Position numbers and translations under genes: made by a program
Part shown: piece after piece, positions 4,023-60,488 of the stretch
Layout of the letters: each line of letters starts with the position of its first letter
How positions within the stretch are numbered: the first letter of the stretch is position 1
The notes under the pieces: model-generated
What the model saw: only the letters and a program-made list of their open reading frames with translations
Databases searched by the model: none
Told to the model about the DNA's origin: nothing
Source of the DNA: Bispira polyomma
Lineage: Eukaryota
Direction: 5' to 3'
Assembly: GCA_965649765.1 (NCBI GenBank)
Contig: OZ287752.1
Location: 17,484,001 to 17,548,000, forward strand
DNA: 64,000 nucleotides

Positions 4023-4113
4023 ATATGAATGGACAATTCAACAATACTGTTAAACTGTGTGTAAAAGTAAGTACAAGATTTACATATAAAATGCCCAAAC
4101 GCCAAGCTGGTAG

Positions 4114-12249: not shown

Positions 12250-12322
12250 ATGGGCATGTTTTTAGTCATGGGATTCTACGTTAATATCCATCTATCTATT
12301 ATCTGGATTTTTACCCTATTTT
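12250..12322 (+). CDS. Gene A exon 1, signal peptide MGMFLVMGFYVNIHLSIIWIFTLF (start may be 12268)
   Basis: Hydrophobic ORF ending T|gtaagt, phase 1, in frame with exon 2. Confidence 0.7.
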
Positions 12323-15300
12323 GTAAGTATTTTTAATTTGTCTTTTGGATACTGAGATGGTGGACCCTTGAATATATATACAAAATGTGCATTACATATA
12401 GTTATCAAAATCTCAAACGTTTTTGTATTGCGTTTTCTTAATCGTTGAGTGACAAAGACAACAAAACGTGTCTTATAATTATAAAATATGAATCTTAAAA
12501 TATTTTTAGTATATCAACTTTTATATTTTCGTATTTCAATTAAATGTTAATTTTCTTTCCACCCTTGAAAACATTTCACTCTGATTTTACCATGTTCTAA
12601 ATTGTAACAAATAATAACTTTCTTCACTTGTTTGAGTTGCTAAAATAGATGAATATTTTAAAGTTAGACTCGGGCAATAAAAGTAAAAAACAGTTGTTCT
12701 ACAAATGTCTTAAGAAGACAAATTACATAAAGGTGTCTTCTCTCGTGATAATATTTTAAAATATGCACCACTAGGGTAATATCCTTGTTGTGTATCCTTC
12801 CATTGCTGTGAAATATGAAAAAATGTGTTTTAAATGTTACAATAATTACGAAAATAATTTATTCAATGTGTAAGTCTATGTAACCTGTTTCTACAACTTC
12901 GCATTCTTCTGTTAACATATTATAGATTTCTAAGTTGTTTTATTATTTTAGGGTTTATTTACAATTGTTTATGGCATGAGGAAAACGTAAAAGAACAATC
13001 TTGCTACATATTTTAGGACCATACCAAACATTGCTAACCTTGTATTATTGGTATTGCCCTGTACACTGGTCAGGTATTTTTTTATATTACGTAAATATAT
13101 ATTCATGTATTTTATTTAGCCTATATCCGAAATAACATAAAAATGGTAACATGTATAAAATGTTCATTCAGATGTACTTGATGTTGGTAATTCAAAAGTT
13201 ACACAAGTGTCCTACACCACACCCTACTCAGCTAACAGTGGTTACTACATACTGGATGGAGAACAGCTGACACTGGAGTGTGTGTTTACAGAAACTCTGA
13301 CCTCACTGGTATGGTGGACACTAAAGGGAAGTAATGAGCAAATCATACTAGTGTCTCCTAACACAGAGGATAACATACCTGAAAGTGAGTATAAATCCAG
13401 GATAGAAGACTCAACACTAACATCAACATCTCACCAGTTGGTGATTAGAGTCAACAAACAACAGGATGAGGAGCAAGAGTTCAGGTGTTATGTTGTCACT
13501 GAGGAGAACCCTTTTGGATCTGACATAGATATACGACTGGGGAATAATTTAGGCAAGTTGTGTATGGGTTACCTTTTGTAACACTCAAATTTGGCGAAGT
13601 AAAACAAGTTATAGTGTTATAGGAACTACAATATATATTTAATATACCAGTATCTATATTTCTACAATATTTATTATTACATAATTTTAGTGGTCGTGAC
13701 AATTTGTTACTCTAATGTCAAATACTGTAAGACCTAGTTATCAAAATATTATGCAGGTATGGTTTGTTCCGAATTCTGGAATATAATGGTCATATTCCAA
13801 ATAGTTCTCAGAATATTTTATGTAATAACACATTGAGTATTGTTTAATTAGGGTAGAGTTCTCAGATCTACCATCACATCAAGAGGGTTAAGTGTTATTT
13901 TTTTATGTATAGTCTTAATAATTTGATCTTAATTCATTTATACATTATCACCTCATTTTCCAGTCCGCCCATCATCTGTGACACTAGAAGGTCTAGATGT
14001 TGTAATAGAAGGAGTACAACAGATCATAGAGTGTGATGTGAACTCAGTGTACAGAGGTCAGGAGGTCACAGAGTTTGGTGTAAAGGTAGGAGAGTCTACA
14101 CTGATATCTGGTACTAAAACACAGACTACAGGGTCAGTGAGTGGGACTTATACTGTAAAGCATAGACAGACTGCAACATTTACCTACAGTGAACACCAGG
14201 GTCAACAGGTACAGTGCAAGGTCACATGGATGGAAGGGACAAGTGTTGAGACAGTGAAATCATCTACAATCAAGACACTTGATATTTATGGTATTTAAAT
14301 TATATTTAAAATTATCATTATAATAGTATTTATATAAAAGAGGTAGTATTAAATTAGCATATATAACATTTCTAATAATACATGAACATGAGGAAATTTT
14401 GTCAAATATTGCAAATTTTAAGTTGAAATTTCTCGGTTTTACACGTTTTTCAATATTTTGTACATATTGTTATGTTTGCCCTTAGTTCCAGCCACAGATG
14501 TAACTTTAGAGATATCTGACAGTTTAATACCAGAGGACACTCCTGTAACCTTCATCTGCACCACCTCTAGTAACCCCTTACCCAGACTAAGACTGTACAG
14601 ACAGAGGGAGGGTCAGTCTACCACTTTGGTCAAGTCTGTTAATGATGTGACACTGAGCTGGACTGACAGTGTCGACTCAGCTGACAACAAGGCTGAGATT
14701 TACTGTAGAGTAGATGACAATAAGAACATTGCAGGCTGGGAGTTTGATGTACAGTCAGGGAGACAGGAGATTATTGTATGGTGTGAGCAATATTGTATTA
14801 TGTTTTATTTCTGAATCATTTCTCTCTTATAGATAACAAACGGATGTGTATAGCAACAATAGTCCAATTGTCTACGAACTGTCTACAATTGCCATTGGAA
14901 ATGCACTATGATTTTAACAACTTTGTCATTGATGTTGCGCTTTAAAAGATGCCTGGCATCAATCAAAAACAAAAATAAGCGTGTTCAAAATCTATCTAAT
15001 CATATCATACAAGTCTACTATTTACATTATCTGGGTTATGTTGTGACCACATATTTACATTGTATTGGACCGTTTACTCCCGATTTAAAGGACCTTGATA
15101 AAACGTCCAACATCTGGGCATAAACTGAGCATTAACTGGTGACATCTGTAAGAACAGGAGGCAGAGTCGTAAATTTTGAACTGCTCTGAAAGCACATCTT
15201 CAGATAACTGGAGAAAAGGGGTGTGGTTGGTACTTAAACAAGGGATAAATGGGCCTTAAACTACTTAGAACGTGTGCAAACTGGACAGAACTGGTGTAAT

Positions 15301-18300
15301 CTGGTGTAATCTTGAGCAAACGTTAAATGGACGTGCGATGAACTTCCTAGATCTGATCAACTGGTTATAAGCTGGTGAGACCTGGTCAAAACTGGGAATA
15401 TCCTTGGCATAAACAGGGTATAGGGCATGCAAATATATGCAAATGAGCATTTCCCTCCAGTTATAATGGTCAGGAGTAAAAACTGGTATTAACGTGGCGA
15501 GATTTTGGACAGTGTGACTTCCACATTGTATTAGTAGTAGTAATATTTTCACATTAATGGGTTTGTGAAGGAAAGGGTATTTGTATTCTATGTTTACTAT
15601 TAGCTGTCGTAACTATTAGTGTCCAAATGCTATCAGGGTGCTAATATATACATCCGTGCCAGTGTACCAACTGAGAAAATATGTTAACATCACAAGCAGG
15701 TGATGTAAAAAAATACCTCTAATTGAATTCACATTTTTGCTAAATTTAATTCCTCTCTTGTAAAGGATGCTTATTTGTTTTGCTGCCTGACTTCCGCACC
15801 ACTGTTGCAGGTCACTATAATGTCCCTTAAATGTGTTCATCAATATTATCTTGATCAAAATTATTTTTGTTGGTATTGTTTTTCTTTCAGTCAAACCTTC
15901 CTTGACATTTAATGCTAACACAAGTCCCAATTCCAAAGAAGGAGATACCAGACAGATAGAGTGTACCTCCACATCAGCCAACCCAGAACCTGTACTGACT
16001 CTGTACAGAGAAGATGTGGAGGTGAATTCAGAGACAGGGAGAGAACTCAGTTATAGTGTGGAGATAACAAGAGAGATCAATGGTGTGACATATAAGTGTG
16101 CAGCTACTTCATCTGATCCGGGGAGTTATGGCTATGAGGTGTTGTCTGAAGGCAACTATTACACTGTTTTATGTGAGTTGTAGTTAGAATATCGTTATTG
16201 GATACTCATTTTGCATGTAATCATCCATTATGTTTTTAAATCTTATTTATTTTACTGGCAAAAAGGGAACAGAGAAGGCTGTCTAAAGCATTTCAACATT
16301 AATATCATGCAAACTAAAAAGGAAACTTTTTGAATCTACGAAAAAATGTTAGTGATTATTTCTTGCTTGTGTACTCTAAATATGTGTGGTGTCGTATATT
16401 TGTGTAAGAGTCATATAAAACTTAAAGCTCTCAATGATAGCTTATGATATCAGAAAATGCTTAAACCAGTGTTCAGAATTAAATAGATAATGGATACAGT
16501 CTTTATTTCCACCTGCACACTGCATTTTGAATAATACAAGACTACATATAATGTAAAGCACAGTAACAAATGGTTCCTGATATAGCAATGGCAGTTTATT
16601 TTAATTATATTTTCACCCAAAACCTGGATCGATGTGTAAATGTTTTGATTGTCATTAGATTAGTTTGTCACTTTGTGAAGCAAAAATTATGCGAATGGTC
16701 ATTGTGTGTTCATTTTAGTTGAGGCCTCCGAATTGACAATGACCGATGCTCCCTCAGAGTTGTTAGAAGAGAACACAGATATAACAGTGGTGTGTAGAAC
16801 AGATGAAGGTATTCCTACACCAACAGTGAGGTGGTACAGAGATGGTGAGACTGTACCTGTAGATACTGACCTAGAGACAGTGACTGATGAGGAGACTGAT
16901 GGTCAGTACAATGCTAAATATGTGGAGAGTACACTGAAGATACAGACTGATCGTACACTAAATGGAAGAGAATATAGTTGTGTGGTGGGAGATACCAGTC
17001 TGGAAAGGCAATTTACCCTGGGAGTGATTTGTAAGTTATAATTTGGTATATGTTGATGTTTTTAAATGACAATTTTAGTATTTGTAAAAGGAATACAAAT
17101 CAATTTCATCAAAAATAGAAATGACATTAAATTGATTTAATTTTAAAGAGGAAATTCATCTTCACTTGAGGTAATCAAAATAATTAATCCAGATGACCGC
17201 TCACTTAAAAATAATAAAAAAAAAAATTCAAGTCAAATTTACACCCATATTCATTGTTATGCAACATAATTTTGAAATTATACTTTAAGATATTTTAAAT
17301 TCATTTTCCCCTTTCATAGTAATTTTCATATATATGAATTGGGATGTAGTACGCCACACATAAATCTTCAACAGGTGACCTTGATTATGGATTGGCATTT
17401 GTATATATTTGCAAAAATATAGATTTCCAGATCCCTGTTTCTGTAGATTCAGAACTGTGGTAAGATATACACATAACTACTACTTCAATCTTGAGTTTAT
17501 TAAATAAGCATGACGGTTTTGTGAGCATGACGGAATTGACTTATTCACTTTTAAAAAACACGATTGAAGTGATGAAACTTGATAAGATTGATACAAATTT
17601 CTTCCCATTAATAGCTAAATTAAAAAAAGGAAATATCCAAGAAATATTGAACTAGATCATCATCTACAGACCAATCTTCTTGGTTGTCGTTCATCATTCT
17701 ATTATTAAAGCTGTAGCAGGATTATATTATATGCGCTTTAACACATTATTTGACTTATATAATGAATCTTGTTGGTCACCATTTATGCTAGTTTGAATTG
17801 GCTGCAGACGAGACTGTATTTTTTACAGATGTCTTTATTGATTTTATTTTGATCTTGTTTACCTGTAGCCATTATCATGTTTTTACTAAAGTTTAGACTA
17901 CTTGTTAAAAAGAAAACTCAGCTCTTGTTTCAATTTACACCCGTAATTCAGACTATGATCTTGCAATTGCATGTATTTTGTTGACATATGCTCAAAATAT
18001 CAAAATTGTATCTAATAAAAATATGTTAAGTTACATTACTCGACATACATACAACACACTTGTACATAAAACCTCAAAATATCCACCCCCAAACAAGGAG
18101 ACAAGTTTGCATTGATATTCACACCATAGGTTCTTACATTACAAAGGTTAAGTCCTCTGTATGTTAAATATTAAGTTATTCAAACTTGTCATGTGATGTC
18201 AATTTACCTGTTCACCATTATATGAATCTTGTTCAGATATCCTCTTATATATCTGTGTCATTCGAGGCTATGATTGATTCCCATTGTAATTATGTGCCTG

Positions 18301-21300
18301 GGTGTTTTTCCTATATTACCCCAATACTGCGCCTTAGAGTCCCCTTTGTTAAGGGGAGATTAAGCGCAATAAAAGTCTAATTACAATTACAATTACAATA
18401 CCATGGTAATACTCTTTGGTACAAAAGGAATAAATAAGTTCAAGCTTTGATGTTTTTTGGCTGTATTCCCTGAGTGATTAACTTATTGATCATTGATGCC
18501 TATGTTCACATAGTTTGCATAGCGACAAATACCAGTAATCATCAATATATGACTCATTTGATTATATGTCTTACATGCTTCTTTATTTTAAGTACAATGA
18601 ACAGTTGTCTCAAGCAGTGAGTTTGTTGGTAATTAACTCGCGGTAAATAACAACCAACTAGCAATCATATACTGACTCACTCACTTTTGCTAACATGGTT
18701 TTGTGAACAAAACAGCTGGTCAGCAAAGCATACAAAAGCCAGGTTGATACACAAACCTTAAAGAAGCACGTTTCTGTCTGTGTCATCAGTGGGGAAAGAT
18801 CACCAGTGAGTGATATGTGTACCAGAGTTACACTGGCTACTGATCACATTTCATAGAAGACATATAACTGATTCAGTTACAGAGAACACAGAGTTAACAT
18901 TAACCAGTACCTCTGATGAGTCCAACCCTATATCTGATCTAGATTACTGTTTACTACTTTCTGTCACCTCAGTCAAACTCAGGTCCTGACCAACTGATCC
19001 TATTTTTGAGAACACTAAGTACGATGTCTCAAAGTACAGTGTTAGAAGTTTAATCTATAATATTAAAATACATCAAATTAGTTCATGTTGTATCTATTGT
19101 AACAATATCTCCCTCACGTTCCAATTACAAGTGCATGTAATACTACTACAATAATTAGAAAAAAATTGAGTTCCACTTTGCATCGATGTTTTCTATCAAA
19201 TGCATCAATTTTAGTTGTAGTTAAACTATTTGTGGTCCTACTGAATGAAAAAATACTGCAGATCACTGCATACATATCATATTGTGTAATATATGAATGT
19301 AAATCGATTAAACATCAGTTTTAATTATTTTACTATGTTACAAGATCCTCCAGTAGTATTGGTTCAAAGTGCATCACTGACAATAGAGGAAGAGTCACTG
19401 TTGCTTATTAGCTGTTACATCGAGGTCGGCAACCCTAGGAACATCACCATTCAATATTGGGAGTTTGAACCCAAGTACCCCGACCGTCAGACCCAGGCTC
19501 TGCCAGACCAGAGAGAGAACAAAGAGCTGACTATAGAGAGTACAGTGTACACTGATGCCGGGACTTATAGATGTACTGCAAGAAATGCAGTAGGAAGTGA
19601 TACAGGAGAGATACATATTGTTGTACATTGTAAGTAATTAGGTAGATGTACTACAGGGAATACAGGTGGGAATGATATAGGTACATACAGATGTTTTACA
19701 TTGTAAGTAATTACGTAGATGTACCATAGACTTGTTACTGGATTTAATTTATCAATTACATCCATAACATATATGTAACAGTTATTGATACAATCTGTTA
19801 TTTAGTATTTACAGTATGCTATTCATGAAAATGATATGTTGAATGCACATTTTTAATAATCTATTAATGTAATATAATAATATTACAGATGTTCCACAGT
19901 TATTGACCGTGGGTACATCAATCTTCTATGCTGCCATAAATGTGTCTACAACTTTAAATATCAGTGTGAGAGCTTTTCCAGGGTTTACTCATGTTAGCTC
20001 AGCATTTATTTGGACTTTTAAGGGAGATTCTGTCACCAATGGGTTTGTTACTTCCTTTGAAGTACAAGATGAGGTCTTCTATTCTCAGCTGGAGATAGAT
20101 TCTGTTATGATAGACGATTATGGAGACTACATTGTGACTGTTAATAATGGGGTCAAGCAAGATGTTTCCTTTATGCTCACCTTAAAGCTAAAGGGTAAAT
20201 ATTCTAATCAAGTGTAATAATGAAATTAGCCAATAATAGTTCCTACATGATTGACAAAATTGGCTTTGGTGCACTGCAGAACATGTGAAACCACTCTTAG
20301 AAATGTTTCCATCCATTATTAAACTAAAGGCTATTACACATTGACAAGATAAGTATACTCTGTATACATTTCAAATAAATACAAAAAGTATTTTTATTGC
20401 AAAAAGGCCCACCACAAGCCCCCCAGACGGTATATATTGAAGCTGTGGCTGCTGAACAAGCCAACATATCCTGGGTTGTTGGATTATCTGGAGGATTTCA
20501 GCAAACATTCAGAGTGTTAGTAAGAGAGCTTATGTCAACTGAAGAGATGTTTTACAGTACTGACCGTGCCAATCCAGAACAAGGAGATATAGTCTACTTT
20601 GTAATTGTGGGCCTAAAACCAGAAGTAGAATATGAAGTGATTGTTCTAGGTATGACTGAATATAATGGAGGAAGTCAATCAAGTAGTGATGCAGTCATGC
20701 TGGTAACTAGAGGTAAGATATTTTACAATGAATTTTAGTTCATTGAAAATAATATACATAATACTTTACAGTTCAGTATTGGACTTGCTTCATATGACAC
20801 AAACTACTTTATTCAATATAGCAAAACCCATTTTAAATGAAGATGATGTGGTTGTTGTACAGCTTGAATCCTATGTTGTTGTAACCTGGAAGTATACACC
20901 ACTTGATGTGAACTATACAAGTGTTACAGTAGAACAATGTAAAGCAGAGGGGGGCTGTACAGAACACAGAGTGACTAATATTCTAAATCAAATCCTGACC
21001 ATTCCTTTGGAAGCCGGAGATACTTTCTACCTGGTAATCTATCTTGATGGATTGGAAGCTTACAGGAGTGGCGAGTTGACAGCCAGTAGGTCTCTGGACG
21101 CATCGACACAAAGTATGTTTTTCAACACTCGTATCTTTACTTGAAATGATTTCAGAAATTGCAGAACAAGCTTTTAGGAAGACCGAGATTGATTTTCATA
21201 AATATTCTATTTTATCTATGTATAAGATTTTAGTCAATATGGAAATACTCTGAGAATATATGAGTTTTACTTGTGATGGTTAAACCTAGATAATACTTTT

Positions 21301-22492
21301 GGAATTGGAGATACACCTCAACTTATGATTTAGTTTGTGATATATTTCATAACATGTTAATATTTGGTTCAAACTATTTCAACTTTGATTATGATCTGAC
21401 ACAACTGTACCATTACTTTACATATGGGTTAGCGTTAATGGCTCATGATTGTATAGGAATAAGTGGGTATAGGGTGTACAGAGAATAAGTAATGGTCGTC
21501 AACTTACATATATGTATTTACATTATTTCATAGGTATGACTGAATATCAAAAGACATCTGGCAAAGGTAACTATTTTGTAAAATTACTTTTATTCAATCG
21601 TCCTCAAAGAGTACAATGTCAAATTATTTATGCTGTGAAATAATACACTAAGTTGTATAATATAGTTTGTTGTTTTGTCAGATGTTGCATGGATTGTTAT
21701 TGCAGGAATATTCATCACAACCACATTTATTCTGTTATTGCTTGTGGCTCTGTATATAATCAGGAGAATCCAGTCACAGAAAAACAAGGTTATTCTTTTA
21801 AAATGTATAAAGATATAACAAGATTTTAAAGGTTAAGGTAATCCATGGGAATGTGTATTCATCATGTTAAAAATTCGGAAAATTAAGGAATTAGTATGAT
21901 AAACAACACAGACTTATATTTCAATTTCATTTAATATAATTATTGATTTATGATTTTGTCTGAGATAGGCACAGAATGCGATTGATGAAGATAAAGAGAC
22001 ATGGACTTACGAAAATACAGGACCAATATTAACATATGAAACTCTGAAGCAAAGAGAACAAGACGTGGATGTGGCCACATATGCTGACTTAACAAATACT
22101 GCTGTAAGAACGTTTAAAACACATTGTGGAACACTAATTGTGGCAATAATTTATCAAACCAAATATAATAATGATAAAACATGGTCAATTTAATAATATT
22201 TTTCGTTTTGCGGTGTTTGTTAGTAATTGTGTGACATTACCATACATGTGTTATGCAAAAATATAGATGACCCTAATTTTGTAAAATTTTGTACACCTTT
22301 TGACATTAAAGAAGATATTTTATGACTTTAATACGGAGAACCTGTAACTTGCAATTACAGTGTTAAAGAATTAAAAGTTACTTTACCATTACTGATGGTA
22401 AATAGATGGAATCATTTAAATACAAAATCAACATTACCAAATTTCTGTTTATATTGTAGGCAGATACATATCAGAATGTATCCTCACAGTGA
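12250..22492 (+). CDS. Gene A: multi-exon IgSF type-I receptor (SP, V-like Ig + 6 Ig, FN3, FN3-like, TM, Tyr-motif tail); nephrin/sialoadhesin-like architecture
   Basis: 14 in-frame exons: 12250-12322, 13172-13552, 13964-14290, 14486-14782, 15891-16172, 16719-17030, 19345-19629, 19889-20194, 20407-20712, 20822-21112, 21534-21566, 21682-21788, 21969-22103, 22460-22492(TGA); all extracellular introns phase 1. Confidence 0.85.
13172..13552 (+). CDS. Gene A Ig1 (V-like)
   Basis: ttcattcag| YVLDVGNSKVTQ..LTLEC..VWW..DEEQEFRC; donor G|gcaagt (GC). Confidence 0.85.
13964..14290 (+). CDS. Gene A Ig2
   Basis: ttttccag| VRPSSV..IECDV..VQCKVTW..; G|gtattt. Confidence 0.85.
14486..14782 (+). CDS. Gene A Ig3
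   Basis: ccttag| VPATDV..FICTTSSNP..DNKAEIYC; T|gtgagc. Confidence 0.88.
15891..16172 (+). CDS. Gene A Ig4
   Basis: tctttcag| KPSL..IECTSTSANPEP..NGVTYKC; T|gtgagt. Confidence 0.88.
16719..17030 (+). CDS. Gene A Ig5 (C2-like)
   Basis: ttttag| EASEL..VVCRTDEGIPTPTVRW..DRTLNGREYSC; T|gtaagt. Confidence 0.9.
18328..18395 (+). mobile_element. Extremely 5'-truncated L2/CR1-group LINE 3' end with (ATTACA)n tail
   Basis: Identical to the reverse complement of 43181-43244; hairpin CCCCTT-TGTT-AAGGGG; possible TSD caatac. Confidence 0.85.
18743..18990 (+). pseudogene. Relic Ig exon fragment(s) in a gene A intron
   Basis: 18864 onward reads ITDSVTENTELTLT-S-TSDESNP, with the canonical B-strand Cys as AGT (18906-18908); upstream VCVISG..RVTL resembles an Ig F/G strand. 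Confidence 0.55.
19345..19629 (+). CDS. Gene A Ig6 (I-set-like)
   Basis: ttacaag| PPVV..ISCYIEVGNP..YW..DAGTYRCTARNAVG; T|gtaagt. Confidence 0.9.
19889..20194 (+). CDS. Gene A Ig7 (Cys-less I-set-like)
   Basis: attacag| VPQ..LNISVRAFP..FIW..SQLEI..DDYGDYIVTVNNGV; G|gtaaat. Confidence 0.85.
20407..20712 (+). CDS. Gene A FN3 domain
   Basis: GPPQAP..ISW..GGFQQTF..GLKPEVEYEV; G|gtaaga. Confidence 0.88.
20822..21112 (+). CDS. Gene A divergent FN3-like domain with Cx5C
   Basis: aatatag| AKP..VVVTW..NYTSV..QCKAEGGC..FYLVIYLDG; donor A|gtatgt (alternative at 21086). Confidence 0.75.
21534..21566 (+). CDS. Gene A 33-nt stalk micro-exon (SMTEYQKTSGK)
   Basis: tttcatag|...aaag|gtaact, phase 1-1, open frame. 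Confidence 0.6.
21682..21788 (+). CDS. Gene A transmembrane exon
   Basis: ttttgtcag| DVAWIVIAGIFITTTFILLLLVALYIIRRIQSQKNK |gttatt. Confidence 0.85.
21969..22103 (+). CDS. Gene A cytoplasmic exon
   Basis: AQNAIDEDKETWTYENTGPILTYETLKQREQDVDVATYADLTNTA |gtaaga. Confidence 0.8.
22460..22492 (+). CDS. Gene A last coding exon ADTYQNVSSQ*
   Basis: attgtag| phase 0; parallels the short Tyr-bearing last exon of gene B. Confidence 0.75.
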   Translation, partial: ADTYQNVSSQ

Positions 22493-28914: not shown

Positions 28915-28968
28915 CAAATGATATTCAGATATCAGAAAATACTGATGGGTTATATTCTGTGAACTAAT

Positions 28969-29020
28969 ATGGAAGGGATACTTATTCTAATAATAATGTG
29001 TGTATTACACCTGTGTGTGT
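28969..29020 (+). CDS. Gene B signal peptide exon [17 protein letters not shown]
   Basis: T|gtgagt; homologous to 49373-49424. Confidence 0.85.
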
Positions 29021-32000
29021 GTGAGTACTAAATATGTTTATACTGTATGTAAATGTTCTAAGATTAAGACTAAATATTGCAGGTTAAATAGTTACTGTCT
29101 AAGTGTATAACGGTATAAATTCCACTTTGTTTTATAATTTATTATTGAAACCCATTTGAATGACAGTACGTTTCATTTGGTATGGGTTGCTTGTTTCAAT
29201 AGTATTGTCAATTTTTGTTTGAAAAACAAAACAACTTAGTAAACAACATCTATCTACCTGTAGTCTGCACTTTTGTTTCAGCCATCACATGTCCGAATTC
29301 AGGCAATGAATACAACAAAGAAGTGTATGTAGAGGCTGGAGGTTCAGCAAGTTTGCAGTGCGGGTCATTGGGTCAGGATACCGCAGTATTTTGGTATTAT
29401 GGGCCAACGTTACAAATCATTGTTATCCACAACCTTGATGGTATTAATGATCCTGTTTACGCAGACAAAGACAACTTCCCCAGGACAAAGTACAGCTATA
29501 GTGAAGTGGATCTATCACTGACTGTGAACAATGTGGGACTAAGTGATCAAGATTGTTTTAGATGTACGACAACTCCATCTGACAGCCAAACTACAAGTCT
29601 TGTCACTGTTATAGGTATGTGTCTATTGATATCTTCAGTAGTTATTTTATGTATTTATTATTTTAATTTCATACAATGATCAAGCTGATGATGTTTTACC
29701 TCTGCAAAGAGGATTTAATTATTTTCCATTTTACATATGTGACGTACATTTGGTGGCCCAAGGGATTAACTGCTTTTAAACACTTCAACAGCCAGTAAAA
29801 TTGTTAAAGTATGAAATTCAGACAAGCATAAAAATGTAATTGACTTTTTAAATGTTTTTAACATGATAGTGTGTGTCCTTGATTCTGATTTCCTATAGTG
29901 AAAATGTAAATATTCATGACTAGCTACTTACTATTTATTACCCACTGAACACCAGACCATAATCCAGAATTTAAAGCTCATACATTTATGTTTAACGGCT
30001 GTCGAGATTTCAATGTTATTTTTATAATGATGCAGGCAAGGCTTATCAAGTAGTGTCTATATCCAACAAATTTATTAAGTATTTAAAGAATGGAGGATTT
30101 ATCTAAAATAAAATTACTGCGAAACACACCAGTACCCGTCTGAAATTATTCAAACATTATTCATTGAATAATAAATGCAACTTATTTTATGACATTCTTT
30201 GTTTTCCATATGTTACTGACTGTGTGATGCTATAAAGCTACACATTCCAACTTATTTAAGTATTTTGTGTTGTATATCTAACATTTAAAAAATATGAGGA
30301 TATTTGAGTATGATCATAGATCAATATATATGATAAAACATACAGTAATATCAATGTAAAATTACCCGACTGAAGCCTGGTTTTGTATGTTATCACAGAA
30401 GTGGTTAAAAAATTAACAAAATTAACTAAAATTAACAAAAAATGATACACCATTTAATAACAAAAGTTTTATTCTTAACTTACATATATTTCAGCAAATT
30501 CCACTTTGATATTGGATTTTGTAAATGTAATACCCAATCAACAATATTTTTTGACCCAAATAAGGATTTTTTTTGACAATTGTGTCATAGGTTGACATAC
30601 GGTTAATTGATGTTGCTGCTATTGTCAAGGATATATTTTATGTTTAGTGAGACCAGAAGCACCAAGCTATACAGTATTTCCCACTTTTCAAGAGAACACA
30701 GATACTTCTGTCCAGTGTAAAGTGTCATCTGTGAAACCAGGGATTGGAAGTCTCCAGTTTACTGTCAGAGTAGATCCAGACTTCAGTGTTGAGAGTTCAG
30801 ACAGTGAGTTGTCAGAGGTAGAGGTAGACTCCAGTACAGGGACTGTATCAGTGAGTTACACAACAGAGATCAGACTACAGAGAAAACACAATGGACAGGA
30901 TACGGTGTGTGAAATAGAGTGGAGAGGAGAAACCTTTATTTCTAATACACAACAGGCTGATGTGGAATGTAGGTGGTAGATACTAGATTACATTATGTAG
31001 CTAGTTCTTTAAAGTAGTAAATATTATTAGGTAATTAGGTTGTAACCTTTACTCAACAATTACAGATTGTACTTTAACATTATGACGTCACTGTTCCACA
31101 ATCATATTTTATATATATTTCAGTCAAAGCCTCACAGCTGACTATGGAAAACTTATAGCACTACAACATTATTACTGTTGTTTCTGAAAAATGTTGCATT
31201 GGTTTATTAAAATTGACAAATCTTTTATTTTAGTCAAAGCCTCCCAGCTAACTATAGATGGTGCCCCAACAGACTTAGTAGAAGAAAACACAGATACAAC
31301 AGTGCTGTGTACAACAGATGGGGGTAATCCTACACCTGTAGCGAGGTGGTACAGAAATAGTCAGACTGTACCTGTAGATACTGACCTAGAGACTGTGACT
31401 GATACACAAACTAGTGGTGGTCTGTACAATGGTAAAGTGAGAGTGAGTACACTGAATATACAGGCTGATAGGACTCTACATGGACATGTATACAGATGTG
31501 AAGTGGAAGACACTAGTTTGGAGGAATCATTTGAACTAGAAGTGCGATGTGAGTTGATGCAATTATATTTAATCAGTTACTGTGCTAACCTATTAGTAGG
31601 AGTTAACTTTAGTTAACTATAATTTTGGCTACTGAGGCATATTTCATAATATTATTGAGGTATATTCATAGATTGCAGTATAAAATGACAGATAAAATAT
31701 TTTGTATTGACTAATAAACAAGGCTTGGAACCTGTTGAGTATAAATTTCTGAAAGCCTACTACCAGAGGGAATTAATATATCCTAATATACTATTATTAC
31801 AAAACAGTATCAAGGGAACTGTTACATGCATAGTTATAATCATATCAACAGAACATTTTGTTTTTATCTACCACTGTGGTTTAATGGGTAACAAACTTAG
31901 ATGGGTCAGCTTCATTCTAAATTGATTTAATGTGGTTTCAAATTTGTGGTTTTGATTACCCACATGCGGTTTAAAGAAGTAGATTAATTTTGTTTAAAGT

Positions 32001-49372: not shown

Positions 49373-49424
49373 ATGGAAGGGATTATTATTATAATAATAA
49401 TGTATGGTCTACACCTGTGTTTGT
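49373..49424 (+). CDS. Gene C signal peptide exon MEGIIIIIIMYGLHLCL
   Basis: T|gtaagt; 52 nt as in gene B. Confidence 0.85.
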
Positions 49425-52400
49425 GTAAGTACTAACTAATCTAATTCTTTATATTCCGTATTTATAAAAGTTAATGTTAAAGTATATATTGAACTAACTA
49501 TTATGATTTATGCATAAAACTTTTAATAAATAATTACACTCACGACTTAAAATATGTGTGTAAAGATCTATAGAATTTAGATCATTTTCTTGAGATTTCT
49601 TTGTCTTTAATCAAATATCAATCCAGAGTTAGAGATTTTAGCAAATTGATTAGAACTTACATTTATGCTTTTATTATTGCTTCTTCAAAAATATTTGCCG
49701 TTAGGCTTCAGTTCCTTCTTTAAATATTATTTTCAATTGTTTGTGTGGAAAGCAAAACAACTTAGTGAACAACATATATGCAACTACTAAGTAATCATAT
49801 CATACATGTACATTAGTCAGGACAGCAAATTAGTAGTGTTTTATTTTCAGCTGCCAGTTGTCCTCATTCAAGCTATGAATATGACAGTGAAGAGTTTGCA
49901 GAGGCAGGAGGTTCATTTAATTTACAGTGTGGATCATTGGGTGAGGACACAGTAGTAATTTGGTCCTACCAATCTGGAACACTTCTGGTAAAACACAGCC
50001 TTCAGGGTGGTGACACTGGCGTTGTGTATACTAATGAAAGCATCTACCCCAGGACAAAGTACATTTACAGTGAGGTGGATTACTCACTGACTATACACGA
50101 TGTGGGACTAGAGGACCAGAATTGTTTTAGGTGTGCAACAAGTCCATCTAACAGACAAACTACAACTCTTGTTACACTTATAGGTATGTATGCAGCAACA
50201 AACTCTCTAATAATTACTTAATTCAATATATTTATTTGATTATGTATGTTCTAAGGAGATTTGGAGTGTATTAACATTTGAATATGTGGTTATTGTCCAC
50301 GTCTATATTTTTCTTTCAGTTACTCTCAGGGTGCCTGCATTTTTCAACTGACTTTGTAGTCTCATGTATTCTTAGCTGTATGGTTTTGATGTTATATTAC
50401 AGGTGAAGAAAGAAGAAAATTACCAATCATTCAATTATTACTATGGTTTATTATGATGTGCCTTAAGTATACTACTGTACAACTGGTTTCTGATATATTA
50501 TATATTGTGAATCCAGTATGAGTACAAAGGTTATATTTGGTCATTGTTGTGAATGTTTTTAAGTTTAAGCCAAGAAAAGAAAAAGAAAAACATCTCAAAA
50601 CTTAAGTAAATTTGACAATCTAGTTAATGCATTCACACCATTATCTGCCTCAGGCCTGTATAGGTACCTAATATGTCTAACAGGCAAACTATTTTGCCCT
50701 GTATATTCACTTAATATATCAGTGATAATTTGATATCACAAATAGATATAAAAAAGTGAGACAATATCAATAATGAGTAAGAAGAATCAAATCAGTGTCT
50801 GATATATGCACAAGTGGTGATATTAGTGATATCCTTGTATCCAACTGTAAATCGTTTTAAATCATTGGTAAAATTTCCATGTGTAGTTGTTGGTGCTTCT
50901 TTGTGCAGACTGGAAATCACTATTAAATTTTTTATGTGTAATTTGAGACACTTTTTTCAACCTGCCCATCCATATTAAATTTTACATCAATAACACAGTC
51001 ACAAAAGATTTCAATGGCCTCTAAGGCAAATTTACACAGTTTGTCTACTGTCCTACCCACAATAATATCTTTCACCTCATCATTGCTCAAGTCCAAACTG
51101 ATAAATGTTGTCTGGGGACTCTGACCAGCGACATACCTTCCACTCTCCAACCCCCAAACACAATTCTAATAAAGTGAAACTTTAAAAGAGTATGATAAGA
51201 ACAAGAACAACTGAAGTTCTGAAGGCTGCACACTATTGGCATTATAATATACCAGTGATACCTTGCTCACAGTCATATTCGATTTTATGCTATTTTTCAT
51301 TCATGACACTTACGCCATTTTCAACAAATTTGTTTTTGTTGTTTTTAGCCCATTTTGTCATACAGTTTAATCCCAAAAAATTGTTGTTAGAGACCATTGA
51401 TATCATCATTGTATTTTAATAATTATAGAATATGGGAAACAATTACACCCTTCCTAAACGCATGAATACTATATTGTCTGTTTAAATGTTAATATATATA
51501 TATATTATGAATCCCCAGCAGTCTGTCATTGTGACCTAGTGGGTAATCCACTCACTTGGGAATACAGTGCTTTAGTGCCAATCTGGGTCCAGCAGGTACA
51601 GGCAGATAAATAGTTGCTGGTGTATACCATGCAATTGGTCACTTGATCCAACTAAAATAGTTTCAGTGGGTTTTTTTATAATATCAACAAAATGTTCAGT
51701 TTATTGCATTGATGTTTTCATTTTGTGTTTAGTAAGACCAGACACACCCAGCTTCACAGTATTTACCACTTTTCAAGAAGGCACAATGGAATCTATCCAG
51801 TGTAAAGTATCATCTATCAAACCAGGGAAGGGAAGTATCCAGTTTACTGTCAGAGTAGATCCAGACTTCAGTGTTGAGAGTTCAGACAGTGAGTTGTCAG
51901 AGGTAGAGGTAGACTCTAATACAGGAGCTGTGTCAGTGAGTTACACAACAGAGATCAGACTACAGAGAAAACACAATGGACAGGATACAGTGTGTGAAAT
52001 AGAGTGGAGAGGAGAAACTTTTATTTCTAATACACAACAGGCTGATGTTGAATGTAAGTAGTATATACATATGGTAGGTTACATTATGTAGCTAATCCTT
52101 TGAAATAGTAAATATTGCTAATTAATTAAGTAACCTTTGTTCAACAGTAATATATGGTATTGTAGCATTATAATGTAGCTAATTCTTTGAAATAGTAAAT
52201 ATTACTAATTAATTAAGTAACCTTTGTTCAACAGTCATATATGGTATTGTAGCATTATAATGTAGCTAATTCTTTGAAATAGTAAATATTGCTAATTAAT
52301 TAAGTAACCTTTGTTCAACAGTCATATATGGTATTGTAGCATTATAATGTCATTATTCTACAGTCATTTATTAAAATGAAATGTTACTGGTAGCTGTATT

Positions 52401-55400
52401 AATACAATCACGAAAATGTAAAATATGTATGCTGGATTCAAAACATATATTATCCCTTGAATCAAAAGGATACTGGAGAACCTTGTTTTCAATGATAACA
52501 TATATTCCCGCCCAAAGGAATCTCTACTTACAAGCACCCTAGGTACTGTATTTAGAGTACACAGTTTTGGGATTTAAATTTAATAAAACGGCCAAAATGG
52601 GTTACAATATATATATACACACAATATCTTAGGGTGACAAGTCAGTTTTCAGTATATATCCTCCCACAGAAAACCACTCACACACATAGACAAATATATG
52701 TGATGACTAAAAAGCCTGATCACAAGGGTATCCTGATGTTTATTTGGTGAAATTATCAATACTTTCTTAACTAAATAATAAATAAACAAAAATAATCATG
52801 AGCACATGGGGATGTTTGGGTGTTTAGATAATACTGAATGATTTCAAGTGCGAAACAAACAAGAACAGTTCATGAAAAAAAAACAGAGAAGAGCCGTGGG
52901 GCAAGGCTACTGAATGAAGTAGTCCTATATCCTGGTGGTTTTTATCTTTGAAAATGTAAACATATAGCCAGCACAACAAATGGGGGGCAGAGGGGAGGGC
53001 ACAGCTGTGATTCTGGCATGACTTTTTGAAGCGTCTCCCCCAAATGGACATTTTAAAACTAAACAATTGAAAACTGCATGAAAATGTTCAAATAATTATA
53101 TATCAAAACATTTCATTGTTGTAAAGTACTTGCCACCAAAACAAAATGTGACATCAGTACTTACAGCTCTTGCATTATAATATATCCCGTAGATATTTAT
53201 CATTGTATTTCCAAAGACAAGCAACACACATTAAAGGCTAGATCTTATCAATTTATCTTGACAGATATTTGTAACACATTTCTTCCGGGTGTGATTAGAA
53301 CTGGGTATCTTGTTTTGCTGCTCCCTTGCACCAGTCTTACTGTGGGCTTTTTAGACTGATGCTGGGCTAGAAAATATAGGGAATATTTATGGGTTTTGGC
53401 TTAGAGAAAGACGGATTGCATGTAGGGACACTAAAAGACAACTTATGTGGCATTTAAAGATGTGCCAGTCCCATTCTATTATGAGAGCCTTTAGGGCCTG
53501 CATCCTAATAGTATATTTATCAGTTTTCCTTATATTAGAATAACACATGTTGACAATAAGTATATTCCTACACCTTTATATGCTAATATGAGGGTGGGGT
53601 TTCCACTAGCTGAGAAGTGTTCAAACTGTAAGGGACGTGTGTAAAGTGGGCAGTGGCCTTTACGTGACTGTGTTATACACTGTGGGAATATTCTGGCAGT
53701 TGTTTTTTTAAAGATACAGCCACGGTGAATTAGCTGACCCTATTACACGCTGGTCTGCTAATTTAATATATAGTCCATCACCATTTAAAATTTGATGTTT
53801 GTGGTTTCAGTAGCTAAACCTTGCCTTAATTAAAATTAGATTGCATAGGTTTCCATTCAGTTATGGGGACTCATTATTTGATGTTCAATGTTGGATAACT
53901 ACATGCATTCCCACCAAATTTAAACACCATATTTATATAGTTCTCACTACCTCAACGACTGTCATGTCCTTACCTACTGGTACAGCTGTGTTTGTGTGGA
54001 GTAAAGATAATGATCCAGTAACACCACATGTATCCCATCTAATTTAAGCACCACATTTTGTAGTTTCTGCAACCTCAGTCACCATTACTTCCCCCTACGA
54101 TGGGCCAGTGTCTGAGAACACATATGTGTATTATAAATACTTTGTGTTAATTATTTTAATAAAAAAAGTAAGACAGTTTATATATATCAGTCAGAATCTC
54201 GTCCAGAAATGAATAAGAATTAAAAGATGAGAGTTAACGACTTGGGAATCTATTTTATTATTCTCTAAAGGTTAGTGATAACATAGGTTTACAAACATGA
54301 GGAATTTAAAGCCCCAACATGGTATACTAATAAGATACTAAAACACATAAAACATCTTATAAAACAAGTTAGTGGTACAACACCAACATCAACTGCTAGT
54401 TCAATACTAAAACCCATAAAACATGTAAACAAGGGTTGGTGATGCAACACCAAGCAAGGGTGGGTGGGATTCAAATCATTTAACATAAAAGTTCAATATA
54501 ATGAGGTGGAGGAGCGATGCAGCTACTTATATAGTGGGTGGTCAGCCCCTATTGGTCAAGAGTGGACGAGTCCAAATTTGGACCAGGCGATTTTGACTGA
54601 AGGTAATAAGCTTTGCGTTTATTACCCCCACAGTCAGAATAAGAATTAAAAGATGAGAGTTAACGACTTGGGAATCTATTATATTATTCTCTAAAGGTTA
54701 GTGATAACATAGGTTTACAAACATGGGGAATTTAAAGCCCAAGCCCAAAACAGCATTTATGTAGAGGAATTTACCAAATGTTGGAAGGTGAGAGGGACAG
54801 TGTTAGTTTGAGAGGTATTGGAGCTAATGTAAGACCAGACTGCATCACTCCTCCATGTACCATGCATACGGATGCTGTCCATATCTACATTCGCATCGTA
54901 TGCCAACGTCGCTGCAGAACGACGAAACGTGTGGAAGCCATGCCCTAACAGAGGCACTTCCATGATTCTTAAAATTGAAGCTAACCTGCGTCTAAGCATA
55001 GACTGCGTCAATATTTCATAGTGATCAGTCAAGAATAGAGAATAAGCTTTGCGTTTATTACCCCCATATACATCATTATGTATGTATAATACATTTCATA
55101 TATTGTTACTTCTGAATAAATTGTTAGATTCATTAAACTAAGAAGGGAACTTAATATCAGTGCAACAAATATATGTACATGTAATATAAAATTTCAAAAC
55201 ATTTGTAAGAAAACAAAAGTATCGAAGACTGTTGCCTTATGTCTGAAAACAGTTACCTTTGTACGATCAGTTCACAAGTCAAAAAGACATTCTAGCAACA
55301 GTTTATCATATGATTCTCCTTAGCTGTGAAAGATCTGGCTCATGAGATTTGCTGCCTCCGCACTTGCCTGTTTTAGGAACAAGCTCAAACCTACCAATTG

Positions 55401-58400
55401 AGGAAGGCTTTTCCACCTTAGGCGACTCAACTTTTTCCTCCATCTCCGCGGTCATGACCTCTGTATGTTCAATGGCTACATGAAATTGACAAATGATTTT
55501 CTGTCTCATGCACCTTAGAATCTTCTAGATCAGAGATAAGCACTATACATTAGATTAGACGAGATTTATAATGCGAAACAATTGATACTGATACTTATAA
55601 TATGTCTATGTTTTTATATTCATTTTGTTTCATGTTTAAACATGGTGACTTTGCAAATTTAATTGTGTGACTCTCACAAATCAGGTCTACAAACTATCAC
55701 AATGGTTAATATAACATATATATTTATTTATTGCCTCTTTATTTTTTCAGTTCCGCTTAATGTTGCAGTCATTCAAAATTCGTCACATTTTGTGTCAGAA
55801 GCCTCAAGTCTGACCTTGACCTGTGAAGCTACAGGAGGTAACCCACCTGTAGTGCTGTCTTATAGCTGGAGTTTTGTAGCTCGGTATGAGGATAGCAGTG
55901 AGCTGAGTAGTGACACAGAGAAAGTGTTGGAGCTTGACGGTGTAGATTACAGACAGGCTGGAGTGTACAAATGTGAGGTGACTAATGGGCGAGGTGTGAA
56001 CAGTGGGAGTAAAGAAGTACTTGTACAATGTGAGTAATCAAGTATTGTAATAGTAAATATAGTAGAGTTTGACATGGTACACACGGGTCCAAATTGATAT
56101 TATATTATAACAAATGATACATACGGCATGATATTCATCAAATAAACAATAATAACATATAAACTTGTCTCATGTAACAGTTGTTATATTGCAAAGGCGG
56201 TAAATTGTTCCACTTTGTGTTTACATAACATACAATACATGATGGTCATTTACGTTTCCTATTTATTGGTACATAATGTTAATGTATGTACTTTGTCTCT
56301 CAATTTAGAAAGTTTATGGTAGACCATAAATTTTTTGTTAAAATTATTTCTGGTCATTTATCTCACAGTTTCCCCAATAGATGTGAGTTCACCCATACAG
56401 AAGGTCACATACACAAAAGTAAATAATAAGGCTTTACTAAACTGTACAGTGAAAGCTTATCCACTAGTCACTACTGATCATGTGGATGTCGTGTTTAATG
56501 GTTCTAAAATACCTAGTAACACTACCCATGTTCAGCCAGTGGAAGACAAAGTGGATGAAACTCTGATAGAGCTGACATTTGACCATGTTACAGTTGAGGA
56601 CTTTGGTCTGTATCAAGTTGTACTGAATAATGGTATAGGAGATGAAGTGGTGGTTGAACTACACTTGATTGAACAAGGTCAGTAATTGCTTTACAGCTAC
56701 AAAAAGTGTTTAGATTTGGAGCAATTATTAGTATAACAGGCACTTTTTATGAATATTTAACTACACAAAAAACAAAACTCTAATCGATAAAGGAAAAAAA
56801 AAGTTATATTAAACAACACTTTTAAGAAAGCCTAGGTGTCCAGTAATTCAGGCATATCCTCAGTTATAATATTTTACAGTCCAAGTGTTGTTTTATTTTT
56901 TAAATATATAGCAGTACATAGATTAAACATTCGAAAATCTTAAACCTCAAATATTCCATTGTTAGTAACTGCAAATATTCTTTGTTCTGTGTTTCTTTTT
57001 TATAGTTTAAAGTTATAACCTATAACTTAAGAATATTGTTAGAACTAAATATGAGTAAACATTAGTCAGGAGAGTTCACTTTTAGTTAACATATTCATGA
57101 TGAATCAAGTAGAGAAATATTGTAGGGTTATAGTATTTTGATACTTCACCTTTGGATTAGGTGGCAATTTTGCAGACAATGTTCAGACTATATCTCAAGA
57201 AGTACCAGATGTTTGTGATACCAAAAATCTCAAATATGTTATAGCTTAAAATCAGAAAGTGCATCACTGTTACCCATAATGTTAGTTACTTTACATTTAT
57301 TGATTATCTATTCATTTGCATATGTAATTTTTCCAGCTGTTCCAAAACCACCACATTCTTTGGTCTTTGAGTCAGTAACTGCCATATCAGTGACCCTCTC
57401 TTGGATTTCTGGTCAGAGTCGTGGTGCAGAACGAACCTTTACAGTGTATTACAGACATCAAGGGGACACCAAAATACTGTATCATGCTGGAATCCAGACC
57501 AGTGAAAATAGCAAAATAACTGTGTACAAAGTGTCCAGTTTATTACCTGATACAGAGTACTTTTTTAGAGTTAAAGCACAAAACCAATTTGGAGAGAGTG
57601 AACATCAGCCAGAGATATCAGTTACAACTTTAGGTACCTGCATATCTTTAGTTATGCCACCATTAATAATTAATAAGTGCATATTTTTGTCCAATGAGGT
57701 GTAAAATTTAAATATATTCTCCATATTGTTTGTATACAGTCAATATGCAACAATTGGAACTTCTAAAGCAAGGAGGCTGTCATATCTATGTATATTAAAG
57801 TTTGTAAATGCATATGTGGCATAGCAGCGAACACACATGCAGGAATGCAGATGTTTTGGGTTGAACCCCAGCTTGGGTGTCCCAGGTACAATTAATACCA
57901 CTTAAAATCGTGGTGCTCTGTTGTTTGGTTTATACCCAATGACTTTTAAAGAACCTTGGATATGTTGATATTGTCATTCTTAAGCTTTTGTCTTCAGTTA
58001 GTAGGATGACATGTACTGATGCTGGTTGGCTGTAGTTGAACAGTCATAAAAAATTGTTTGTTACACACTTTGAATACCAAACAATGGCAAATAAATGTAT
58101 TGGGTATACATATGAATCTAATACATATGACAATTCGAGATATTATATACCTTTTACTCATAATTTAGAGTCATATTTTCTACTTTATCTTAGGTCTACC
58201 ATCAGTGAAAGGGATATTAGAGGCAAAAATATATGGAGATGCTGTGATCTTGTACTGGGGATACATAGATGGAAACTACACAAGAGCTGCTCTATTGCAG
58301 TGTTACAATGGAAGAGAAAATTGTGTGTCCATATACCACATTACTGGTGTCAGTGTTGCAAGATATGCAGGAGACACTGCATATGATGGAGAGGAGTATT

Positions 58401-58921
58401 ACCTTGTGATATATCAGGATAATGATGAAGTAACAGCCCAGCAGTTTACTATGATTAACAAAAGTATGTTTACCTGTGAAAAAAACCCAGATCTTATAAA
58501 GTTTGTGTTCTGTTTGACATACCAGATTGTTATTTAGATCTGTAAGAATGTGGTCTGCTTTTCAGTTGTTAAAGTAACTGGACTGATAGCGGGACTAGTA
58601 ATCACATCCACCATGGTTAGTTTACTTACAGTTGCCCTAATTGCACTGATTGTGTACTACAGAAGGAGACAGAACCAACATGGTGACACTACTAAATGTT
58701 CTCCCGTAAGTAATAATATGGACAATTACTATATTTACCAGACTTAGATCAATGACAGTATGATTTGTGTGATATGTGTTTTCTTCTCTTTTAGAGAGTT
58801 TTCATTAGTTCCATTTAGTTTTTTTGTGACATGTTTTTATTTAAAGACATGTATATTTTTTAAGAATCAAGGTCCACGTACATCAAGAAATGTACCATCT
58901 AAACATGAAATCAACAACTAG
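49373..58921 (+). CDS. Gene C: paralog of gene B with 4 Ig, FN3, FN3-like, TM and a truncated Tyr-motif-free tail (candidate decoy receptor or young pseudogene)
   Basis: Exons 49373-49424, 49851-50183, 51733-52053, 55751-56029, 56369-56677, 57337-57633, 58194-58463, 58566-58705, 58865-58921(TAG); ancestral last exon at 59114. Confidence 0.83.
49851..50183 (+). CDS. Gene C Ig1 (V-set-like, 4 Cys)
   Basis: ttttcag| ASCPH..GGSFNLQC..VIWSY..DQNCFRC; G|gtatgt. Confidence 0.9.
51733..52053 (+). CDS. Gene C Ig2
   Basis: 321 nt, collinear with 30648-30968. Confidence 0.9.
52087..52347. repeat. 87-bp tandem repeat x3 in a gene C intron
   Basis: tgtagctaa..gaaatagtaaatatt..aacctttgttcaacag..gcattataa at 52087, 52174 and 52261; single copy in gene B (~30996-31085). 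Confidence 0.92.
54188..55066 (-). mobile_element. Miniature non-autonomous Ngaro-like element with split direct repeats (A1-YR fragment-B1-A2-B2)
   Basis: aataagctttgcgtttattaccccca at 55042-55066 and 54606-54630; ~105-bp repeat at 54637-54741 and 54211-54315; YR C-terminus FHTFRRSAAT..HGTWRSDAVWSY (54757-55032). Confidence 0.85.
55230..55560 (+). mobile_element. L2/CR1-group LINE 3' fragment (same family as 37170-37577)
   Basis: acgatcagtt.acaagtcaaaaagacatt, aggcttttccaccttag and ccttagaatc..agagataagc..(ttaga)n are shared. Confidence 0.8.
55751..56029 (+). CDS. Gene C Ig3 (equivalent to gene B Ig6)
   Basis: 279 nt; [19 protein letters not shown]. Confidence 0.9.
56369..56677 (+). CDS. 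Gene C Ig4 (equivalent to gene B Ig7)
   Basis: [24 protein letters not shown]; G|gtcagt. Confidence 0.9.
57337..57633 (+). CDS. Gene C FN3
   Basis: 297 nt, collinear with 38917-39213. Confidence 0.92.
58194..58463 (+). CDS. Gene C FN3-like domain with Cx5C
   Basis: [25 protein letters not shown]; A|gtatgt. Confidence 0.85.
58566..58705 (+). CDS. Gene C transmembrane exon
   Basis: VKVTGLIAGLVITSTMVSLLTVALIALIVYYRRRQNQHGDTTKCSP |gtaagt. Confidence 0.88.
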
Positions 58922-58975
58922 GAGATGACAAAACCGAAAGAACCAACACCACCAGCAGACTATACAGATTCGAGG
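58865..58975 (+). CDS. Gene C cytoplasmic exon with premature TAG (58919-58921)
   Basis: NQGPRTSRNVPSKHEINN*; the remainder EMTKPKEPTPPADYTDSR is collinear with gene B. Confidence 0.82.
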
Positions 58976-60488
58976 GTATGATCACTGTATAATTGATACT
59001 TATTCAAATGTAATAACTTAATGAGCAAAGATTTTTTAAATTGCTTTTAATATTTACAGATATTAATTTTATTCCGATACTTGATTTAAATCTGTACTAT
59101 ATTGTCATTGTAGCAAGTGACATATGAACTGAAGAATTGCTGCTTAAAACTTACAAATATACAGAAGAAGAAGTTTAACTGACATATACATAACAATGAT
59201 AGCAACTGTACATACTCAGATGTTAGAACATTTTTATAATATTGCATATTGCATGCACTTAAGTAATAACTGGACTTGAGTCTACTGTGTACCCCGCTCA
59301 TAGATTACAATATGTCTTCCATATACTTTACTAATTTTTGTTTAATCTTAATCTTAAAAAGTAATAATTTGCATGTATTGTTGTATAATCTTGATATTAA
59401 ACACTATTTTTGTCATTTTTATCCTGAAATATCCAGCACTCATATTTTAATATTTGTTGTACCAATTATTTGAATGTATTCATGAAAATATTTAGCAATG
59501 TATATAACCATAGTTATTGATGCTTCCGATTCTGGCTTCTGACAAATCATTAATTTAAATCATTAATTTAAAATCATTGGTAAACTGTGGTAGCAAGGAT
59601 TTATTTCAAAGTAAATATTGTAGTGTTCCAGTGTTACTTTTAACTGACACAAAACGACTTGAGTGAACTAATCATAGTACAACCCACAGAGAATCAAGTG
59701 GGCCATTTCACACCCAAAAGTCTATGAGATATAGGAGCATAGTGTTTGCAGTGGTTCAGATAAAACTTTAGAATTACCACCTAATCTCAGAATGGTTTAC
59801 ATGGAACATATAAAGTTGAAAGTATTGGTAAAAGCTTATTGCTCTTTTATACTTGCAACTTTGGTAACTCTGTCCAAGTTTGTAACCGCCCAGTGTATCG
59901 ATAATAGTTTTTGGTGATAACGTGTTATTGTAAGAAAAATTTGGTATTTACTGATATCGGTGAATCATTTTCAGAAACCCACTGAGTAAATTATTGGGCT
60001 TCTTATTGACGATTTATTGACCCATACATCATGCTGACTCCTTGTCCGTCTGAGGTTGTTTATTGCTGATATTATAAACCAAATTGTGACTGTACATTAG
60101 GCAAAATTGCAAGGAAAAAAACTTTGGGTAAAATTATCCATGAAAGATATCAGGAATACCAAATTATTGCTTGTGGATATGGAAGATATTAACTGCATGG
60201 CTATATTTCCCGGTCAAGTATGTTTATTTTTAAGCTTTGAGCTATATTAAATAATTTCTGGGTTTTGTTTTAATTAGATGGGGTGACCAATAATAGTCTT
60301 CGCTTAACATTTGATTTTACACTTTCAATATGTTAGGCCACTTCTAAGTATATTGGAGTATTTATTTACATTCATATGACATAAAAACAATATATACTAT
60401 ATACTATGTTAAAGATAAATATATATACTTAGGGCCACGCTAGCTTCATTCTTATATAATTTTACATTTACATTAAAAACTTTCTTAT

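Follow-up and report, generated by a model that had tools for sequence, protein, structure and literature searches.

A lineage-expanded array of Ig-FN3 receptors with ITIM-type tails in Bispira polyomma, possibly derived from a receptor kinase

Introduction

Expanded clusters of V-Ig/FN3 receptors with ITIM/ITAM tails are already known from Hydractinia. Nephrin, Sns and SYG-2, in turn, are low-copy, conserved receptors with about 8–9 Ig domains and one FN3 domain. ITIM and ITAM motifs occur in the tails of the Hydractinia Alr proteins (PMC9546547), and both ITIM/phosphatase and ITAM/Syk signalling occur in flies (PMC4503800, PMC8092387). Among vertebrate paired receptors, a charged transmembrane (TM) residue is the usual mark of the activating partner (PMC13358205). 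In the literature covered here, which is an incomplete selection, no described annelid family of such Ig-FN3 ITIM-type receptors was found.

The locus studied here lies in a 64,000-nt stretch of the Bispira polyomma genome (contig OZ287752.1, positions 17,484,001 to 17,548,000; hereafter the window). The contig is 88 Mb long and the genome 1.035 Gb in size; matches to the erythrocruorin linker are in line with an annelid. A first, sequence-only reading had described three same-strand genes in it, A, B and C, as an invertebrate paired-receptor locus with signalling and decoy members. Our analysis indicates that these genes form part of an array of about 100 single-pass receptors that has expanded in this lineage.

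Results and discussion

Gene models and domain identity

The gene models are predicted and were spliced by hand from the genomic sequence. All frames are closed and the splice sites are canonical except for two GC donors, one in the V exon of A and one in the Ig7 exon of B; the latter is common to an upstream paralog and is therefore inherited rather than an error. Gene A (12250..22492, + strand) consists of 14 exons encoding 1055 aa: a signal peptide, a V domain, six more Ig domains, an FN3 domain, a Cys-containing FN3-like domain (Cys-FN3), a linker, a TM segment and a tail with four tyrosines (A-type). Gene B (28969..41866, +) has 13 exons and encodes 1014 aa, with a signal peptide, a V domain, six more Ig domains, FN3, Cys-FN3, TM and a tail with four tyrosines of its own type (B-type). 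Gene C (49373..58921, +) encodes 685 aa up to a TAG codon, comprising a signal peptide, a V domain, three more Ig domains, FN3, Cys-FN3, TM and a short tail devoid of Tyr motifs. The shared plan with 7, 7 and 4 Ig domains, as read earlier, is thus borne out by the predicted in-frame models and by the Pfam and fold matches. Each ectodomain exon encodes one domain and all are in phase 1-1; together with remnant exons and chimeric paralogs, this agrees with the proposal that the exons are symmetric modules that have been gained, lost and exchanged.

Most exons tested matched Ig, V-set, C2-set_2 (CD80-like C2), I-set or fn3 in Pfam. The V-set exon of B (29282..29614, +) yields a predicted V-set fold, with 2B4, nectin-1 and CAR as nearest structures and matches to the V domains of the CD2 family. 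The last Ig domain contains at most one Cys. For the last extracellular domain, the Cys domain, no Pfam match was obtained; it has a seven-stranded predicted structure that matches those of FN3 domains, with two invariant Cys located at the C-C' hairpin. This C-x5/6-C hairpin is invariant and family-diagnostic. The domain is encoded at 20822..21112 (+) in A and at 40178..40444 (+) in B.

At the exon level, the V-type exon of A (13172..13552, +, with the GC donor) shows 84% and 76% aa identity to the V exons of two upstream paralogs with B-type tails. The Ig5 exon of A (16719..17030, +) is 62% identical in aa to Ig3 of B (31234-31548), compared to mostly 15–32% for the other A/B domain pairs, and to judge by this identity it is a module that was either shared or exchanged. 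A degenerate Ig5-type pseudo-exon in intron 6 of A, at approximately 18850..18960 (+), is a weak match. Tandem repeats of 73 and 87 nt are located at 19568-19724 and 52086-52350 and are copied from the end of an exon or from the intron next to it; three upstream paralogs carry similar exon-end repeats after Ig6.

Family size and turnover

A genome search for family size and clustering, as the sequence-only reading had proposed, was performed with the Cys-FN3 exon and retrieved about 98 distinct sites, 92 of them on the contig of the window and 87 within 11–28 Mb. Searches with the V exon and the B-like tail exon gave 101 and 72 matches in the genome, respectively, both of which are lower bounds. 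About 60 family members were counted by position alone, and the sequence-level statements made here cover the remainder, read in 200 kb of sequence and at 30 loci. With these numbers and many broken copies, the description of the locus as part of a lineage-expanded, clustered and fast-evolving IgSF family stands.

In the 200 kb upstream of the window, eight further paralogs are present. Besides C, the resulting 11 local genes include five that look intact and five that are broken. Several local paralogs are chimeric, having A-type Ig blocks joined to a B-type FN3/TM/tail, and A itself shares 76–89% identity over V-Ig5 with an upstream paralog that carries a B-type tail. By coordinates, all four combinations of V type and tail type are present. 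Both subtypes were also found in the assembly of a related species, again in mixed combinations. A, B and C therefore belong to a birth-and-death family that swaps ectodomain and tail halves.

Some further features of the region were observed. The upstream paralogs L031-L032 and L036-L037 each have one stop codon ahead of the TM, in the exon for Cys-FN3 or for FN3, and would produce secreted ectodomains if they are expressed. In paralog L035 (5564-5896), the first tail exon is duplicated, giving seven tail Tyr motifs. Positions 1-8600 of the window hold two copies of a tyrosine-recombinase (DIRS/Ngaro-like) retroelement on opposite strands, with reverse transcriptase and integrase matches, and more retroelement fragments lie near 26000-27200 and 61100-61500. 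An interspersed repeat of about 250 nt with 90–96% identity, which looks like a young SINE, occurs at 26567-26737, 38632-38746, 44960-45205, 46436-46688 and 62702-62952.

Neural wiring is another process in which large, variable IgSF arrays are used. By analogy with Sidestep/Beat, Dpr/DIP or nephrin-Neph, the family could in principle be a cell-recognition or adhesion code that guides wiring or patterns tissues, its Tyr tails feeding Nck/Grb2-type adaptors. The combination of CD80-like C2, V and FN3 domains recalls nephrin and SYG-2, the V fold resembles the adhesion domains of nectin and CAR, and variation between two samples is low near C. However, the solved-structure matches of the searched exon, SYG-2 among them, are generic and not nephrin-specific. 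Moreover, wiring families are stable, unlike the copies found here, about half of which are broken locally and which exchange exon blocks. We consider a wiring code unlikely. The narrower idea of a one-to-one orthologue of a nephrin or sidestep gene does not fit about 98 copies with two FN3-fold domains.

Cytoplasmic tails and transmembrane segments

Most members that were read have a tyrosine signalling tail, and one has lost it. The TM exon and two tail exons of A (21682..22492, +) encode the motifs YENT, LTYETL, YADL and YQNV, in which the ITIM LTYETL is part of a YxxL-x11-YxxL pair. The TM and tail exons of B (40604..41866, +) encode TTYENV (an ITSM), YEMT, YTDL and the C-terminal ITIM VTYETI, without ITAM spacing. 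The earlier count of four Tyr motifs each in A and B is therefore correct, as are the ITIMs in both and the ITSM in B; the ITAM-like spacing is limited to A and is not conserved.

Three tyrosines are invariant across nine B-type tail exons, including those of the second species, and the terminal YE[TA]I is present in seven of seven intact local B-type tails as well as in the second species. The ITIM-type site thus matches the consensus, is kept among paralogs and nearly so in the second species, from which the ITSM threonine of the B-type tail is absent. The A-type tail has three copies in the genome, two of them in broken genes, so that A is its only intact carrier. Its LTYETL is retained in the second species. 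The third tyrosine, the partner in the ITAM-like pair, is lost in both copies there, which weakens A as a candidate ITAM receptor. Other subfamilies have tails with YxN followed by YxxL/I-x10-YxxL, an arrangement that may represent either extended ITAMs or phosphatase sites in tandem. The YxxL and YxN sites are generic SH2 sites. None of the 36 TM segments read in this family of about 98 members contains a charged residue.

Gene C

In C, a TAG replaces the second tail Tyr codon (58919..58921, +), 54 nt before the last exon junction, a position borderline for nonsense-mediated decay. An assembly error was rejected as its cause, since contigs from each of the two samples contain the TAG. In the second sample, a 4-nt deletion just after the TM is seen in addition. 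Downstream, the rest of a B-type tail is recognizable in decayed form (58922..59182, +), where an 8-nt deletion in the last exon removes the ITIM. The tail exon of C has accumulated 13 private changes, versus 1–7 in its paralogs. Based on these remains, the tail of C is B-type and truncated by a nonsense codon, and does not constitute a distinct short-tail class. Only two of the 72 B-like tail exons bear a stop, and among about 31 close tails that of C is the sole one killed in this way, so C does not represent a receptor class.

The ectodomain of C had been called intact, without tail motifs. The second part holds, as no Tyr motif precedes the stop; the first does not, given the 5' remnant of a lost Ig5-type exon in intron 3 (54064..54167, +). 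Its acceptor is intact and a cryptic donor follows at 54168; if used, the 104 nt would cause a frameshift. Beside this broken exon lies a fragment resembling a tyrosine-recombinase retroelement (54200..55100, - strand), identified by eye from the ORF text and without a Pfam match.

Whether C is a retained tail-less, non-signalling receptor acting as decoy or in adhesion is, on present evidence, evenly balanced. Both fixed frame-breaking lesions and one polymorphic lesion fall within the cytoplasmic 8% of the coding sequence (p ~0.007 for two lesions after the stop), while the remaining ectodomain exons are open; in simulated decay, a neutral ectodomain would stay open in just 1–3% of cases at 4–6% divergence. 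On the other hand, the private ectodomain changes have a pseudogene-like dN/dS of 0.81, compared to 0.74 in a pseudogene neighbour. The broken Ig exon with its live acceptor and the proximity of the stop to the last junction also count against retention, and an old dead tail may have been grafted on recently.

These observations bear on the paired-receptor proposal, in which inhibitory B-type members would be opposed by members with almost identical binding domains that either activate (A-type, ITAM-like) or act as decoys (C). The V-Ig5 block that A shares with a B-tailed paralog, the occurrence of all four V/tail pairings, the confinement of the C lesions to the cytoplasmic part with an ectodomain open beyond neutral expectation and the YxxL/I-x10-YxxL tails of other subfamilies are in its favour. 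Against it, the A-type tail is rare, mostly in broken genes and short of its third tyrosine in the related species, and C combines a pseudogene-like dN/dS with a broken Ig exon and a stop borderline for decay. As no charged TM residue was seen in the 36 segments and C is the sole stop-killed tail among its close relatives, with stops in just two of 72 B-like tails, the paired system is weakly supported and we regard it as distinctly unlikely. The signalling-versus-decoy interpretation of the locus is therefore not upheld.

V-domain variation

As read earlier, V is the most divergent Ig domain between B and C, with 55% identity versus 66–88% elsewhere, yet its dS is also the highest among the B/C domains. 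The divergence thus points to mosaic histories as much as to selection. Across all B/C domains, dN/dS ranges from 0.39 to 0.57. In V, replacements are concentrated on the predicted CC'C''/FG face, with p ~0.0004 for each of the two V subtypes, in an analysis of three sequences per subtype that has little power. In terms of the modelled fold, V variability is focused on the predicted binding face. The per-domain dN/dS comparison suggested by the sequence-only reading gave about 0.5 over the whole V domain and 0.6–1.0 on the face, with no value above 1. Consequently, neither diversifying selection nor V-specific positive selection is demonstrated. Between the two samples, few differences were found near C, over its 3' part, a stretch without the V exon.

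Relationship to Lingula receptor kinases

A search for homologues with a single exon returned only fragments from a related assembly. A profile of the Cys-FN3 domain was run against 1.84 billion proteins. The matches consisted of exon fragments from other assemblies and two fused models of another animal, and led to Lingula anatina. Its protein P0070 has an Ig-FN3-CysFN3-TM series, a Tyr-rich juxtamembrane region and a complete FGFR/Ret-like kinase, and P0071 has the same ectodomain (57% identity in the proximal part) without a kinase. Their automatic NCBI names are 'tyrosine-protein kinase receptor TYRO3' and 'hemicentin-1-like', respectively. Conversely, when the proximal ectodomain of P0070 was compared to the Bispira polyomma genome, the Ig-FN3-CysFN3 family gave the top matches. 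As far as these searches, run exon by exon for this family, reach, the closest annotated relatives appear to be an FGFR/Ret-like kinase of Lingula and its kinase-less twin, not nephrins.

Like the family described here, P0070 and P0071 combine an Ig stalk, a Cys-poor last Ig domain, FN3, Cys-FN3, TM and a Tyr-rich juxtamembrane region. They also occur in tandem, the kinase-less P0071 carries a V-like domain at its N-terminus, and the match is reciprocal at the family level. Identity per exon is just ~25–38%, and P0070 differs by its full kinase, none being seen on members here: in A and B the Tyr tail is the final segment, and no kinase domain was found beside cluster members among the candidates scored. 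The tyrosine spacing of a related kinase-bearing model (13, 14) resembles that of the B tail (12, 14), which is only a hint. A Cys-FN3 tree has too few columns to place the Lingula kinase or to order events. Taken together, these findings make it probable that the family either descends from an FGFR/Ret-like receptor kinase or has a common ancestor with one; direct derivation of the array from such a kinase is possible.

An outlying family member at 69.9 Mb of contig C5 has kinase exons on either side, with 42–74% identity to the Lingula kinase. These exons belong to two receptor-kinase-like genes (69.89-69.99 Mb, one exon being 74% identical) on the strand opposite to that member. A family-type FN3 exon was sought on the kinase strand and none was found. 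Elsewhere, about 15 intronless kinase ORFs, almost identical to each other, form an array at 97.6-99.1 Mb of contig C4, and many kinase ORFs of ~411-418 aa are scattered across the genome like mobile elements.

The coexistence in Lingula of kinase-bearing and kinase-less versions of one ectodomain, and the kinase exons beside the outlying member, would suit a role in growth or wound signalling in which kinase-less members trap the ligand of an FGFR/Ret-like kinase or act as its co-receptors. Yet the opposite orientation of those kinases and the absence of a family-type FN3 exon on their strand speak against such a role, and about 100 variable copies would exceed the need of a fixed growth-factor ligand. 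A co-receptor function is thus very unlikely in our view.

Proposed function

The explanation we favour, at roughly an even chance, is a diversified repertoire of recognition receptors, with V tips that would bind variable ligands and tails that would restrain the response. The V domain may be presented at the end of a stalk, the length of which would be set by the number of Ig exons, and may bind a self marker, a microbe or a symbiont. A Src-family kinase would phosphorylate the tail tyrosines; the phosphorylated ITIM/ITSM could then recruit a SHP2-type phosphatase and YxN a Grb2-type adaptor. Most members would in this way damp or tune the response of the cell, as Draper-II/Corkscrew does in flies. 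The binding, the signalling and the tissue concerned are what we infer. The tail itself might be the retained juxtamembrane segment of the ancestral receptor kinase.

A more specific version, which we find unlikely, is a locus resembling the leukocyte receptor complex (LRC) built from a receptor tyrosine kinase. Kinase loss would have left behind a juxtamembrane region rich in Tyr, which then turned into an ITIM tail. By exchange of exon blocks, binding tips would now be combined anew with tails that are inhibitory, differently coded or dead (as in C), serving self/non-self recognition. An ITIM-type array of about 100 genes offers concrete candidates for how annelids and lophotrochozoans tell self from non-self, and the Lingula link suggests a route from receptor kinases to such receptors.

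Comparison with known systems

According to Huene et al. (2022, PMC9546547), the Hydractinia Alr genes are, like those described here, clustered and accompanied by pseudogenes, with one domain per exon and a V-set, Ig, FN3-like, TM and ITAM/ITIM tail arrangement. The Alr family comprises 41 models, compared to about 100 here (PMC9546547). Alr proteins have six invariant Cys across the last Ig and FN3-like domain, whereas a single C-x5/6-C hairpin is found here, and the 4–7 Ig and two FN3 domains of this family are also unlike Alr. For Alr1/2, allelic hypervariability and function have been demonstrated.

Nephrin, Sns and SYG-2 share with this family a V-like first domain, CD80-like C2 domains, FN3 and a Tyr tail; here, in contrast, there are about 98 copies, two FN3-fold domains and many pseudogenes. 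Vertebrate paired receptors (Siglec-5/14, Siglec-11/16 and PILR; PMC13358205) resemble it in having linked paralogs, shared ectodomains with different tails, ITIM/ITSM motifs and exchange between copies. Linked paralogs with similar ectodomains but different tails are represented here by A and its upstream counterpart (76–89%) and by B and C (55–88%). The vertebrate systems differ in possessing a short-tailed member with a charged TM, none of which was seen among the 36 TM segments, and the FN3 domains present here set the family apart from them, so the likeness is one of analogy only. Overall, the locus would work like an Alr- or LRC-type array, yet it departs from Alr, nephrin and the classical paired receptors in defining features of each.
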